A stretch of 64,000 nt of DNA from Bugula neritina (GCA_964035545.1 OZ037765.1:33541504-33605503); one strand, 5' to 3'. Numbered from the stretch's first letter, positions 25,801 to 43,343 are shown. Numbers and translations: made by a program. Notes: a model not told the origin generated them from the letters alone.

Positions 25801-28405
25801 TCAGATCTCAGACTGAGGAGAGATCTTGTATTTGGGAAACAGTAAAACCTTTCTCATGTTAGTGAGAGTGCTGAATACCATTGGCGTCTGCTTCTCAACA
25901 TTTCTCTCTGTCCCAGCAAGCTTCCTTGTCACTTTTCTGACTCTGTCTTGTACCTGCAATGTGATATCTCTCAGACTAAAGCTATGAGTCACTGCAGAGC
26001 ATTTCAGAGCAAGTTGGAAAATATTATTTGTTTAGATATTGTTCTGTTTTATTGAGATACAAAGAGTGTAGTTTGCTGTAGCAATCATTTGTATTACGGC
26101 TGTATAGATGAGCTGTGTGTACTTTTATGGAAAGATGATGACTTGGACAATAAGAGAGTATAAAACACTCACCAGGTAAAACAGAGTAGCAAGATCTGTG
26201 TGAGAAGAGTGTTTGTACAGAGTTTTGACCAGCTCTCTGATGAATGGAGTCCCGTAGTTTGTGTGGCGTATGGAGCTTCTACCTAAATTCACAACACATG
26301 GTATATATGAAACATATCTGAACAAAGCTGGGAGTAGCTGAAATAGGAGAGAATACTTCATTATATTATTTCTATAGAACTAAAGTTTTGTTATTTTTAT
26401 ATCTTGAGTTTCAACATGATTGGCAGTAAATGTAAGTTCCACCAGCTAATCGCGCAAGTCAGAGAAAACAGAGAGACACTAGGAGCACTGAAGATGAACT
26501 CAGGGAATAAAATATGAAAAATAGGCTGCAAAAGAATTGCAAAAAAAAATTAGCTTTCTTAATTTATAACCACAGAAAAAAAACTGACTAATCAATATAG
26601 CTAAAATGACTAAAATACACTTAAGCCTATCATTTTAACATCAAGTTTTTAAATTTCATAAAAACATTAAAAAGCAGAGTGAGAAAAATGCTCACCAAAC
26701 AGATACATTAAGGCAGCAACTTACCATCAAAGCAAGATTGAAGTATCAACAAATCGTCAACATCCAGGTTTCTTGGTCTACTTTCAGTTTGATGACTTGT
26801 TTCAACTTCCTGTTGACCTGAGCTGTCTCTGGTCTCAGTAACTACCCTCTCCATTATGTCATCTGTTTCAACTATAGCAGGTACCAATTTACAAATAAGA
26901 TAACTAGTATTGTGATAGATTCTCATCCTCTACTGTTCTCAAGTAACTGCGTGTGTCAGTATTATAATTACTGTTGCGTATATTTTGAATGCTGTAATTG
27001 TAGCTAAGTTGCACTAGCTTTCTAATGTCTTATTATTGCGATTAAGCTTTCAGTATAATGTAATTTTCATTAAATACGCATTTCCAGAGTTATTTTCCCT
27101 TTTTGCTATTTCATCGTTTTTGCATTAATACTGATACTGGAAATTTGTGTAGCTTTTATGAATTCCTTCAATAGGTTGTTATTATAGCTAAATTCTTGGC
27201 CTATTGAATTATTCATTCTCCTTTGTCTATTTTTCTTTTGTTACTGTCAAGCTTAACTTTCTTTTGTCTGTTGGAACATTCTAGATGTGAATTCTTGTGT
27301 ATAAAAGCAGGCGAGTTTCCAGTGTAGATTCAGACTACTACTGGAGCTTGCTGGTAGTAGGACCACATAAGCTGTATCTGATACAATAAAGGTTATCCTC
27401 ATTTGTACTCAAATACTTGGCTTATTCTTTCTAGAGCATGTAGGCACTAGTTGCATTCAGAACCCACAAGTTTACTACAGTATTATACAGTTGTGCTTTT
27501 CGAGAGATCAAAGATATTAAAGTTACTTCTTGTCCATTGTCCAATGTTAGATAGACGTAGTCTGCAACCTAGTGACCCCCAAACTTAAGTTTAAGAGTTC
27601 ATTTATAAACAGTATAAATTACAGGCTACAAAATACTATAAGTGCTACAACTTAACAATGTAAGACATATTTTTAAAATTCAAAAGCATCTATTCAAAAA
27701 CTAACAAAAATTTATTTAGATTCAGTAATATTTCAGATTTAGTATTCCAAAAGTCAAAGAGATGCTCTGTTGAAAGAAGGCTTTACCGTGTATGAGAAAA
27801 ATGCTGAAAATCTCTGTCCTCTCTCAGTTACAATGAGTTAAAGAGTAAAACACACAACAGATTCAAAAGAGCTTGTGAAACAGAGACAGGCAAACAATCT
27901 ACTCACCACTCCTACAAGCTACCACAATCACCACTTTAGGTTTTCCGGCCATGTGCTTGAAATTGTCGGCAGACAACAGATCAAAGATTTCTGTGAGCTT
28001 GACCGGTTTCCCATCAGTTCCGTAGAGAACTCCGTGAGCACCAAATGTTCCACCATGAGACATGAGTACAGTGACATGCATACCATAGTCTTCATTGTCA
28101 GGTTGTTGAGTTTCTTGTTTGATATCTTTCAGCATTTGCTGTGAACAACACATAATATTTCATATAATATAATTCTATTCATATATGATCTGTGAATTTC
28201 AAGAAATAAAATAATAAAGATTTTTAGTCACCTCAGCGGTTCTGTCATGTCTCACATCTACTTCAAAGTCCAGAAGTGCCAAAATTGTCCGAATATTAGA
28301 CACATCTTTCAGGGAGCCCTTTCTATGAAGCTGAGAGGATTCAGAGAAAGTGTTGTTGTTGATAATCAGAGCTCTCCCTCTTACAGTCTCACTCATTCTG
28401 TACAC
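25801..28405 (-). CDS. Caspase (peptidase C14A) domain exons
   Basis: [30 protein letters not shown]; VLMSHG (catalytic His); [13 protein letters not shown] (catalytic Cys); [32 protein letters not shown]; [20 protein letters not shown]. Confidence 0.93.
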
Positions 28406-40400: not shown

Positions 40401-43343
40401 TTCTCTTGCACGTCATAACATCAAAAATGCTTGAATTACTCATGAAATTTTCACGAGTCCGAATAATTCTTCTCATGGTCATTCCAGAGGGAGGTTATCT
40501 AAATAGTTACACTTTACCCTTACTATTTAATTGTATAACACAGAGAACTCATGCTGAGTCCAGAGATTATAGCCACACTCTATAGCCTGGATATTATTTT
40601 ATATACTATATAAGTTGTGTATAAATATAAGTTACAGAGTAGTAATAATGATGTTGTGAAGTAGTAATAAACATGTGACACACAAACCTATCAGGTAGAC
40701 TGGATATTCTACATTCTCTCATATCCAACTGTTTAAGTGATGTGAGTGATGACACAACATCTGGTACTGTGTTGAGAGTATTGTACTCTATGTCTAGTAT
40801 CTCTAACTGAGTCAGCTGACTGAGACTGTAATATAAAGATATATTAAGACAAGAGAATAAAATTACACATAACATGTATTTTATGCAGCACAGAAATATA
40901 CATGTGACCACAACTCATATTTCACAGATATATTGATTATGGGCAAAAATATTACCCAGATAAAGCGGGCTCTAGCACTTTAAATGGCTTTATACTATAA
41001 TACATATATACATATATACATATATATATATATATATATATATATATATATATATATATATATATATATATATATGTATATATATATATATATATATATA
41101 TATATATATATATATATATATATATATATATATATATATATATATATATATATATATATATATATATATATATAGCCTATTCCAGGAAAGTGAAAGGATA
41201 ACTTGGTAGTGGATTCAATACAATTTGTGGAATTATTATAGAACTTGTTTGTGAGCAGCAAGCTAATGTCTCATCCCGAATGGCAGAATGCTTAATACTC
41301 CACGAAACTATTACTATTAATACTTTATAGGTGCAGCAAACAAGCCATTACCTCTACTGCCCTTTCATCATAAAAGTCATTAGTTTCAGCAACATCAAAC
41401 ATGTGACACACAAACCTCTCAGGTAGACTGGATATACCACAACTCCTCATATACAGCTGTTTAAGTGATGTGAGTGATGACACAACATCTGGTACTGTGT
41501 TGAGAGGATTGTATCCTATGTCTAGCATCTCTAACTGAGTCAGCTGGGAGAGACTGTAATATAAAGTTATACAATGACAAGAGAATAAAAAATTTGACAT
41601 AATATTTTATGCAATACTGAAATATGCATGAGGCCACAACTCTGTATTTCACAGATATATTAATTACAAGTAAAAATAATACCCAAATAAAGTAGGCTAT
41701 AGCACTTCATATGACTAGATACTAATATGTATCTACTAGAAAGTATACAATATGCTAAGCTTTAAACATGGTCATAATTACACTCATACCCTTACTATTT
41801 AATTGTATAACACAGGGAACTTAGGCTGAGTACAGAGATTATAGCCACACCCTATAGCCTGGATATTATTTTATATACTATATAACTTGTGTATAAATAT
41901 AAGTTACAGAGTAGTAATAATGTTGTGAAGTAGTAATAAACATGTGACACACAAACCTCTCAGGTAGACTGGATATATCACATCCACTCATATACAGCTG
42001 TTTAAGTGATGTAAGTGATGACACAACATCTGGTACTGCGTTGAGAGGATTCCTTCCTATGTGTAGTTTCTCTAACTGAGTCAGCTGAGAGAGACTGTAA
42101 TATAAAGTTATGCTATGACAAGAGAATAAAATTACACATAACATGTATTTTGTGCAGCACAGAGATATGCATGTGACCACAACTCCGTATTTTACAAATA
42201 CATGTTGATTCTTTGTCAAAGTTACAATATGCCAGCTAAACTGGTGGCTTTAGCACCAAAGAAGACACCTACAGATATATACCGGATTTTTTTGTGCAAC
42301 TCATAATGCCAAAAGTGTTTCAATCATTGAAATTTTCACTAGTCCTATAAAAAATCTACTCATGGTCACTATGTGCAGGAGGATAGTTAGAAATATAATT
42401 ACACTCTACCCTTACTATTTAATTGTATAACACAGGGAACTCAGGCTGAGTACAGAGATTATAGATACACCCTATAGCCTGGATATTACATTATTATATA
42501 CTATATAAGTTGTGTATGAATATAAGTTACAGAGTAGTAATAATGATGTTGTGAAGTAGTAATAAACATGTGACACACAAACCTCTCAGGTAGACTGGAT
42601 ATTCTACATTCTCTCATATTCAACTGTTTAAGTGATGTGAGTGATGACACAACATCTGGTACTGTTTTGAGAGTATTGTTTCCTATGTCTAGTTTCTCTA
42701 ACTGAGTCAGCTGAGAGAGACTGTAATATAAAGTTATGCTATGACAAGATAATAAAATTACACATAACATGTATTTTGTGCAGCACAGAGATATGCATGT
42801 GACCACAACTCCGTATTTTACAAATACATGTTGATTCTTTGTCAAAGTTACAATATGCCAGCTAAACTGGTGGCTTTAGCACCAAAGAAGACACCTACAG
42901 ATATATACCGGATTTTTTTGTGCAACTCATAATGCCAAAAGTGTTTCAATCATTGAAATTTTCACTAGTCCTATAAAAAATCTACTCATGGTCACTATGT
43001 GCAGGAGGATAGTTAGAAATATAATTACACTCTACCCTTACTATTTAATTGTATAACACAGGGAACTCAGGCTGAGTACAGAGATTATAGCCACACCCTA
43101 TAGCCTGGATATTATTTTATATACTATATAAGTTGTGTATGAATATAAGTTACAGAGTAGTAATAATGATGTTGTGAAGAAGTAATAAACATGTGACACA
43201 CAAACCTCTCAGGTAGACTGGATATACCACAGTAACTCATATTCAACTGTTTAAGTGATGTGAGTGATGACACAACATCTGGTACTGTGTTGAGAGTATT
43301 CCATTCTATGTGTAGTTTCTCTAACTGAGTCAGCTGACTGAGA
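25801..43343 (-). CDS. LRR-Roc-COR-caspase fusion protein (MFHAS1-like Roco with a C-terminal caspase), 5'-partial, at least 1389 aa
   Basis: Exons in transcript order: eight 138-nt LRR cassettes (43206-43343, 42583-42720, 41957-42094, 41416-41553, 40688-40825, 40069-40206, 39454-39591, 38863-39000). Then 30265-32294 (LRR+Roc+COR), linker exons 30024-30101 and 29592-29734, p20 exons 28232-28405 and 27907-28138, and intersubunit linker/p10 exons 26725-26871, 26173-26282 and 25801-25953 (TGA). All junctions are GT-AG and in phase with no internal stop. The weakest acceptor is at 28405. Confidence 0.72.
29200..29415. repeat. Imperfect (CA)n/(CACG) microsatellite
   Basis: Directly visible; intronic. 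Confidence 0.95.
30265..32294 (-). CDS. Large exon: terminal LRRs + Roc GTPase + COR domain
   Basis: LRRs are followed by the Roco hinge [20 protein letters not shown]-loop [10 protein letters not shown]3 DFGGH and G4 LTHLD. The COR region has [28 protein letters not shown] and C-terminal CPHC. A GTGAGT donor at 30264 precedes the ORF's stop codon. Confidence 0.92.
33040..34125 (-). mobile_element. Degenerate LINE reverse transcriptase fragment in the intron between the LRR array and the Roc exon
   Basis: [50 protein letters not shown] and [18 protein letters not shown], split across frames. Confidence 0.88.
34545..35642. repeat. 19-bp minisatellite (tacattactatacatagta), about 1.1 kb
   Basis: Directly visible; more than 50 copies with recurring variants. 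Confidence 0.95.
36900..37925 (+). mobile_element. Possible highly decayed DNA-transposon fossil with a C-terminal Cys-rich (CXC-like) tail
   Basis: Fragmentary translation ..[30 protein letters not shown] resembles the ends of CXC-tailed transposon proteins. Many stops and frameshifts; boundaries uncertain. Confidence 0.3.

Follow-up and report, generated by a model that had tools for sequence, protein, structure and literature searches.

Can one animal polypeptide combine a recognition surface, a GTPase switch and a caspase, so that no adaptor has to stand between sensing and proteolysis? The question is raised by a locus of the bryozoan Bugula neritina lying in a 64,000-nucleotide stretch of DNA (GCA_964035545.1 OZ037765.1:33541504-33605503; hereafter the window, numbered from its first letter). 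The minus strand of the window carries, from 43343 to 25801, a gene that runs from leucine-rich repeats (LRRs) through Roc and COR domains into a caspase, and which a sequence-only reading had put forward as a single-chain receptor of a new class. The LRR-Roc-COR-caspase gene is real, constrained and expressed at the family level, without being categorically new in its architecture. Spliced joints, the same layout in other Bugula loci and complete gene models with identical intron positions in Watersipora support the single-chain reading, and a fused protein is very probably made from this locus.

The gene model and its transcripts

The gene comprises 16 exons (4171 nt in total; Table 1), namely eight LRR cassettes, one LRR-Roc-COR exon, two linker exons and five caspase exons. 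Exons were searched one at a time and junction phases computed for each of them, while questions of whole length were addressed through the database proteins P0007, P0075 and P0175. As the sequence-only reading had claimed, every intron is GT-AG with matching phases, and no internal stop occurs; the GTGAGT donor that it had placed before the stop of the Roc-COR exon is likewise borne out, 35 nt ahead of the stop at 30230 that ends the unspliced open reading frame.

Four studies contributed one run each, and the assembled contigs were placed on positions 26500-32499. Coverage coincides with the exons and drops to zero over most intron bins, except at a repeat near 26.9-27.5 kb. The joints 30265/30101, 30024/29734 and 29592/28405, for which the sequence-only reading had asked for transcript support, are all found in these RNA-type contigs, mostly those of paralogues or alleles. 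The last of them, spanning a 1186-nt intron with an AAG acceptor, is present in all four runs (nine contigs), with 51 letters on its short side in run X1 and 25, 21 and 19 in the others. The 289-nt intron is excised exactly in X2 and X5, and other joints, with intervening letters counted, amount to 289 nt (292 nt in one case) and to the 163-nt intron behind exon 9. In X1, consecutive joints repeat the same depths (42.5, 60.8 and 30.3), which suggests that single contigs bridge exons 9-10-11 and 10-11-12. Three contigs depart from the genome sequence at 32296, the acceptor of exon 9, a departure that fits splicing from an LRR exon.

Several observations weigh against reading these data as one transcript of this locus. 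The joint between the LRR cassettes and exon 9 is visible only as the contigs departing at 32296, only X1 flanks the 28405/29592 joint with at least 31 letters on either side, and no contig covers the whole 26500-32499 stretch. The RNA nature of the runs is a guess, and the contigs are mostly 85-99% alike to the window, so that the RNA support is of family level and comes largely from paralogues or alleles, with some near-identical pieces. The model is also 5'-incomplete: exon 1 opens with an acceptor, and no start exon was located within the window by homology search and donor scan, which a short or distant first exon could escape. A GenBank start at 45998 was considered and set aside, since it passes over the LRR exons and has the look of an ab initio guess.

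The missing start, the lack here of 1.4 kb found upstream in the syntenic copy, and the presence of only about 0.2 of the sampled words in the best RNA runs would also suit a 5'-truncated or silent duplicate whose apparent transcripts come from paralogues. Such a duplicate is quite unlikely, given that none of the 16 exons is interrupted and their splice sites are intact, that purifying selection is apparent against the syntenic copy, and that each run contains 13-31 contigs at least 99% alike.

The same fusion at other loci

The closest named homologues are Bugula neritina proteins (80-86%). Between about 25 kb and 54 kb the window is collinear with GenBank contig VXIV02001674 (L002), where the counterpart of the downstream methyltransferase gene is a 95% match. 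By these comparisons the DNA belongs to B. neritina or to a cryptic sibling of that species. Paralogues with the fusion layout, for which the sequence-only reading had advised a search, exist at three further B. neritina loci with the same exon order, L002, L006 and L007. Their exons are open in L002 and L007, and likewise in L006 except for a frame break in Roc in the GenBank assembly (L006:9360-9404) that reflects either a pseudogene or an assembly error. Complete fusions running from LRRs through Roc-COR to the caspase are found among the RefSeq proteins of Watersipora subatra (XP_067947674.1 and XP_067948342.1). The second of these has seven introns between the end of its COR and the stop, every one of them placed and phased as in the window gene; its first caspase exon likewise follows an AAG acceptor. 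Since the fusion is retained between proteins that are about 30% identical, it is not an artefact of assembly or prediction. When the caspase portion of P0007 was the query, matches came from Bugula alone, and a metagenome scan with exon 9 gave no match.

These comparisons bear on whether an MFHAS1-like Roco gene and, next to it, a separate caspase gene without a prodomain that starts from an ATG near 28411 or 28396 have been joined on paper or by rare read-through. The GenBank annotation of L002 and L006 does break the locus at the 29592/28405 intron, and the AAG acceptor of exon 12 is poor in pyrimidines. Yet the joint occurs in four studies at a depth similar to that of the flanking exons, other GenBank models (P0014, P0007 and P0190) cross the intron, Watersipora retains both the intron and its AAG acceptor, and exon 11 ends open with a GT donor. 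Two separate genes are therefore very improbable, and at the family level the idea is largely refuted.

As a side observation, between the window gene and L002 (25801-32294) introns are 81-90% and exons 85-97% identical, compared with 95-96% for the flanks and the neighbouring gene. This raised divergence of the gene body suggests old balanced haplotypes or conversion from paralogues.

The Roc-COR GTPase module

Every sequence and structure test assigns the predicted protein to the Roco family. On exon 9, Pfam recognizes COR-A (1e-8, above the cut-off) and Roc (5.7e-5), with COR directly after Roc. The Roc motifs are G1 at 31954 with Lys at 31936, G2 Thr at 31849, G3 Asp at 31792 (in DFGG) and G4 at 31585 (THLD), and their residues are shared by 73-77 of the 77 homologues aligned. 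In the same alignment, from which AlphaFold2 built a model of exon 9 with a pLDDT of 90 and a pTM of 0.89, a CxHC...C cluster where COR ends (30430) is also conserved; the best Foldseek matches of this model are LRRK1, the Roco of Chlorobium (C. tepidum) and LRRK2. The NTPase is Ras-like Roc, not the NACHT or NB-ARC ATPase of NLR/STAND proteins.

Against the syntenic copy, nonsynonymous over synonymous differences (pN/pS) are 0.053/0.20 (ratio 0.27) in Roc, 0.063/0.20 (0.32) in COR and 0.028/0.147 (0.19) in the caspase, the most constrained part; judged by these sequence comparisons, Roc, COR and caspase are all under purifying selection. Separately, Watersipora XP_067948342.1 (P0075), itself a complete fusion, has a degenerate P-loop, and some family members may thus signal without GTP binding.

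The caspase module and its linkers

Pfam places Peptidase_C14 on exons 12 and 13, the best PDB matches of the caspase are of the caspase-3/6/7 types, and the p10 exons align with complete homologues. The full p20/p10 caspase with catalytic His and Cys described by the sequence-only reading stands as far as fold and dyad are concerned, and these place it among animal caspases (MEROPS C14A); the active-site motif calls for a correction, as it reads VACRS instead of the QACxG pentapeptide. Both arginines of the S1 pocket are present, HRKGS and SIRH aligning with the conserved positions. The glutamine that belongs to this pocket is Val in the window gene and L002 and Leu in L006 and L007, a change that tells against a canonical caspase and lowers that claim while leaving the claim on the fold unaffected. 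Close paralogues have LACRE and LACRN, and distant members QACR, QACS and QACG.

It is from this substitution that a different role for the fusion could be argued, in which the caspase is weak or a pseudo-enzyme and the protein pairs through COR with active paralogues to regulate them or to be their scaffold or decoy, much like cFLIP. The final Gly of the motif is lost together with the Gln, more distant Bugula and Watersipora members retain QAC, and one Watersipora member has the degenerate P-loop described above. Even so, this role is unlikely: His, Cys and both S1 arginines are retained in all four close copies, the caspase exons are the most constrained of all, and Asp sites persist in both linkers.

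No CARD or DED showed up when exons 9 and 11 and the caspase exons were scanned with Pfam, and the complete Watersipora models have none either, which agrees with the earlier description of a caspase lacking such a prodomain and sets the protein apart from classical initiator caspases, defined by one. The second linker exon (exon 11) gave no Pfam match in a scan that excluded the 25-residue exon 10. The linker motif SD[LV]SD is common to Bugula and Watersipora members, and caspase specificity makes SDLSD in the linker and VETD between the subunits candidate self-cleavage sites. Exon 14 has two in-frame acceptors, 26871 and 26862, and VETD arises after the catalytic Cys only from the upstream one; splice choice at this exon could thus tune self-processing.

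The LRR array and its variation

Each LRR cassette is a 138-nt exon of phase 2-2 encoding two 23-residue repeats (Pfam LRR_8, 2e-5) and sits in a duplicated exon-plus-intron unit of about 540-730 bp; the intron segments flanking the eight window cassettes differ by 6-11% among copies. Cassette number varies as well, from eight in the window gene to four in the syntenic copy L002. For the statistics, β-face positions were fixed beforehand from the LRR motif, and out-of-register duplicates were excluded. Across 19 cassettes of four loci, pN is 0.30 at β-face codons versus 0.037 elsewhere (overall pS 0.07), and residue entropy is 1.43 versus 0.14 (permutation p 5e-5, 19 LRR exons). Two considerations temper these values, in that pairwise pN among cassettes is non-independent and gene conversion may contribute. 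The array thus bears the marks of a recognition surface diversifying on its ligand face, possibly with a share of gene conversion, and this hypervariability backs the receptor idea, which is plausible.

Symmetric LRR exon cassettes and diversification of the concave face are also the signature of the exon-shuffled ROCO LRR-GTPases of brown algae, proposed immune receptors with shuffled LRR exons and positive selection on the concave face (Zambounis 2012, PMC3341825; PMC11378527). Both families are expanded, and a small algal group even has a C-terminal peptidase. However, most algal members have no effector, the peptidase is trypsin-like (IPR009003) and not a caspase, and a cassette holds one repeat (72 bp) there and two (138 bp) in Bugula. 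The likeness is convergent, not homologous.

Relatives and origin of the fusion

That the protein founds a new receptor class is not supported: the architecture occurs in amphioxus gene models, amphioxus hybrids of LRRs and caspase had been described before (PMC2575513), and parallels exist in bacterial caspase effectors (PMC8195603) and Roc-COR-CHAT proteins. An amphioxus protein (e.g., BRAFLDRAFT_67388 / C3XQ16) consists of LRR, Roc, COR-A, COR-B and caspase, and at least 11 LRR-Roc-COR-caspase models across Branchiostoma species were retrieved with the amphioxus caspase as query; the family surfaced only through a profile-free representative search. Zhang et al. 2008 described amphioxus "LRRs-caspase" hybrids and proposed a direct link between pathogen recognition and apoptosis, in a text without any mention of Roc-COR (PMC2575513); the LRR-Roc-COR-caspase models are probably these hybrids. 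The window gene and the amphioxus family share the domain order, an animal C14A caspase, multiple copies and caspase introns at matching places. They differ in that amphioxus LRR-Roc-COR lies on a single exon without cassettes (one gene mapped), SD[LV]SD is absent there, the motif is the canonical QACRG, and the Roc-COR groups apart from the bryozoan clade. In Branchiostoma belcheri, models P0204 and P0207 continue from COR-caspase into a conflict-type GT4 glycosyltransferase, and model P0198 has a Death domain as well. A different caspase fusion, the 916-residue P0210 from a 3.8-kb ENA contig, links LRRs and a QACRG caspase to a membrane region resembling LRRC8/pannexin.

Among bacteria, caspase is one of at least 24 effectors of LRR-AP-GTPase-COR proteins (Kaur et al. 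2021, PMC8195603), and a Runella protease labelled Roc-COR-CHAT activates and cleaves a bacterial gasdermin and kills cells (bioRxiv 2021.06.07.447441). The bacterial proteins resemble the Bugula protein in the LRR sensor, the Roc-COR, the C-terminal effector that may be a caspase-fold protease, and the presence of several paralogues per genome. In contrast, they are encoded by single open reading frames with bacterial caspase-like or CHAT domains, whereas the Bugula caspase is an intron-containing animal p20/p10 type that shares introns with amphioxus, and the nearest named Roc-COR relatives are animal.

These nearest nameable sequences outside bryozoans are MFHAS1/MASL1-like Rocos, which have no effector or a caspase-recruiting adaptor domain, whereas the Bugula protein has the protease in the same chain. 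In a Lingula LRR-Roc-COR-CARD and an amphioxus LRR-Roc-COR-Death protein, the adaptor domain occupies the same C-terminal place as the Bugula caspase. A repeat sensor, a nucleotide switch and proximity activation of a caspase are also combined in NLR inflammasomes and the Apaf-1 apoptosome. The resemblance is at most one of functional logic, and the Bugula protein is not a member of these systems: its switch is a Ras-like Roc-COR and not a STAND ATPase ring, and no CARD, PYD or DED step is involved.

In Roc-COR trees, bryozoans form one long-branched clade apart from the caspase-bearing clade of amphioxus, in which a Death-domain Roco is nested. A joint bryozoan-amphioxus clade receives a p-AU of 0.018 under LG+G4, a value to be read with the long bryozoan branch and its model-dependent placement in mind. 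The bryozoan family thus probably arose independently of the amphioxus fusion, its position in the tree shifting with the model. As exon 9 is intronless, horizontal transfer of Roc-COR from bacteria was also considered. The position relative to prokaryotes is unstable, bryozoans falling inside animal Rocos under a mixture model and beside prokaryotes under a simpler one; long-branch attraction can explain the latter, and a bacterial transfer is unlikely. In the literature search, outside which most subscription journals lay, neither a description of the bryozoan family nor an experimental study on an animal member came to light.

Proposed mechanism

The protein is probably an adaptor-free cytosolic single-chain receptor, composed of an LRR sensor, a Roc-COR switch, an acidic linker and an animal caspase, and a member of a bryozoan multigene family; a role as an immune or non-self sensor is likely. 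Whether the caspase is fired directly by Roc-COR dimerization is an even call that is based on analogy. Initiator caspases are switched on by bringing two caspase domains together. Starting from the observed fusion, family-level splicing, motifs and selection, we infer a ligand, dimer control, proteolysis and death as successive steps. In the resting protein, a monomeric or closed form would be maintained by the LRR arc together with the nucleotide state. When something foreign or non-self binds the concave LRR face, Roc-COR would shift to a dimer, whose COR-COR contact would join the two tethered caspase domains without an adaptor. The caspase would then cut VETD between its subunits, and probably the SDLSD linker, freeing an active protease; this would kill the cell or cleave a substrate used in defence, for instance an effector caspase or a gasdermin. 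New specificities would come from duplication, loss and exchange of the two-repeat cassettes.

The dimeric state would be the GDP-bound or nucleotide-free one, by analogy with the Chlorobium Roco, the best studied, which is a dimer with GDP or no nucleotide and a monomer with GTP (PMC5714945). Human MASL1, a GTP binder, is likewise more toxic when GTP is absent (PMC3995007), and both precedents suggest that the state in which the caspase is on may be GDP-bound or empty.

The same molecular mechanism could serve recognition of self and non-self between colonies, control of symbionts or developmental cell death (polypide recycling) in place of pathogen sensing. Bryozoans are colonial, the family is expressed in several studies without known challenge, and the gene body has diverged beyond its flanks, as at balanced recognition loci. 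Against these uses, large LRR expansions with variable ligand faces are typical of anti-pathogen repertoires (PMC11378527, PMC8195603), and the same design occurs in the solitary amphioxus; they are rather unlikely, and pathogen sensing is preferred. A bolder version of the receptor reading would have bryozoans independently evolving dozens of adaptor-free Roco-caspases as their main intracellular immune repertoire, with a caspase fired by the GTPase dimer, an altered S1 specificity, and cassette shuffling or alternative splicing for diversity; this is possible, if doubtful.

Implications

To our knowledge, bryozoan immunity has barely been studied, and the gene family represents a candidate receptor repertoire for the phylum. 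If the mechanism holds, one Roco-switched polypeptide replaces the sensor, adaptor and caspase of an inflammasome or apoptosome in at least two phyla, echoing the Roc-COR-protease death systems of bacteria and supporting Roco proteins as an overlooked class of innate immune receptors. The tethered caspase would then report which state signals, GTP monomer or GDP dimer, a matter of dispute in the LRRK2 field. Should the bolder version also be true, it would add to CARD/DED platforms and STAND rings a third way of activating caspases, and would offer a natural read-out for the Roc-COR cycle.

Features of the locus and its neighbourhood

Table 1. Parts of the LRR-Roc-COR-caspase gene, all on the minus strand of the window
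Feature	Position	Strand	Remarks
LRR cassette exons 1-8	43343-43206, 42720-42583, 42094-41957, 41553-41416, 40825-40688, 40206-40069, 39591-39454, 39000-38863	(-)	
Intron 8 (6.6 kb)	32295..38862	(-)	LINE reverse-transcriptase remnant ~33040-34100; 19-mer tandem array 34544-35642
Exon 9 (2030 nt): last LRRs and cap, Roc, COR	30265..32294	(-)	phase 2 to 1
Exon 10: helical linker	30024..30101	(-)	phase 1-1; RNA joints match 163-nt and 289-nt introns
Exon 11: acidic linker	29592..29734	(-)	conserved SD[LV]SD motif, candidate caspase self-cleavage site
Exon 12: caspase, p20 start	28232..28405	(-)	S1 arginine in HRKGS; AAG acceptor
Exon 13: caspase	27907..28138	(-)	catalytic His (SHG, 28057) and Cys (VACRS, 27916)
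Exon 14: caspase, inter-subunit linker and p10 start	26725..26871	(-)	VETD-D with the 26871 acceptor
Exon 15: caspase, p10	26173..26282	(-)	second S1 arginine (SIRH)
Exon 16: caspase, p10 end	25801..25953	(-)	stop codon

Upstream of the fusion gene lie broken fragments with an in-frame stop and frameshifts (~49440-50930, minus strand), which we take to resemble the C-terminal region of neuron navigator (NAV/UNC-53) and to be probably a partial pseudogene. A decayed long interspersed nuclear element (LINE; ~46900-48900), an endonuclease/reverse-transcriptase remnant, is also found upstream of the gene, a second reverse-transcriptase remnant being the one in intron 8 (33040-34100). Farther along, at 58076-62324 on the minus strand, is the remnant of a Gypsy-like long terminal repeat retroelement with a gag containing a CCHC knuckle, an aspartyl protease and an integrase zinc domain (GC content 54-60%). 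Elsewhere in the window are an intronless methyltransferase gene at 21205-21912 (minus strand), read as ATPSCKMT/FAM173-like, and a SAP-domain gene at ~15881-20394 (plus strand) that is myocardin/MRTF-like in appearance.

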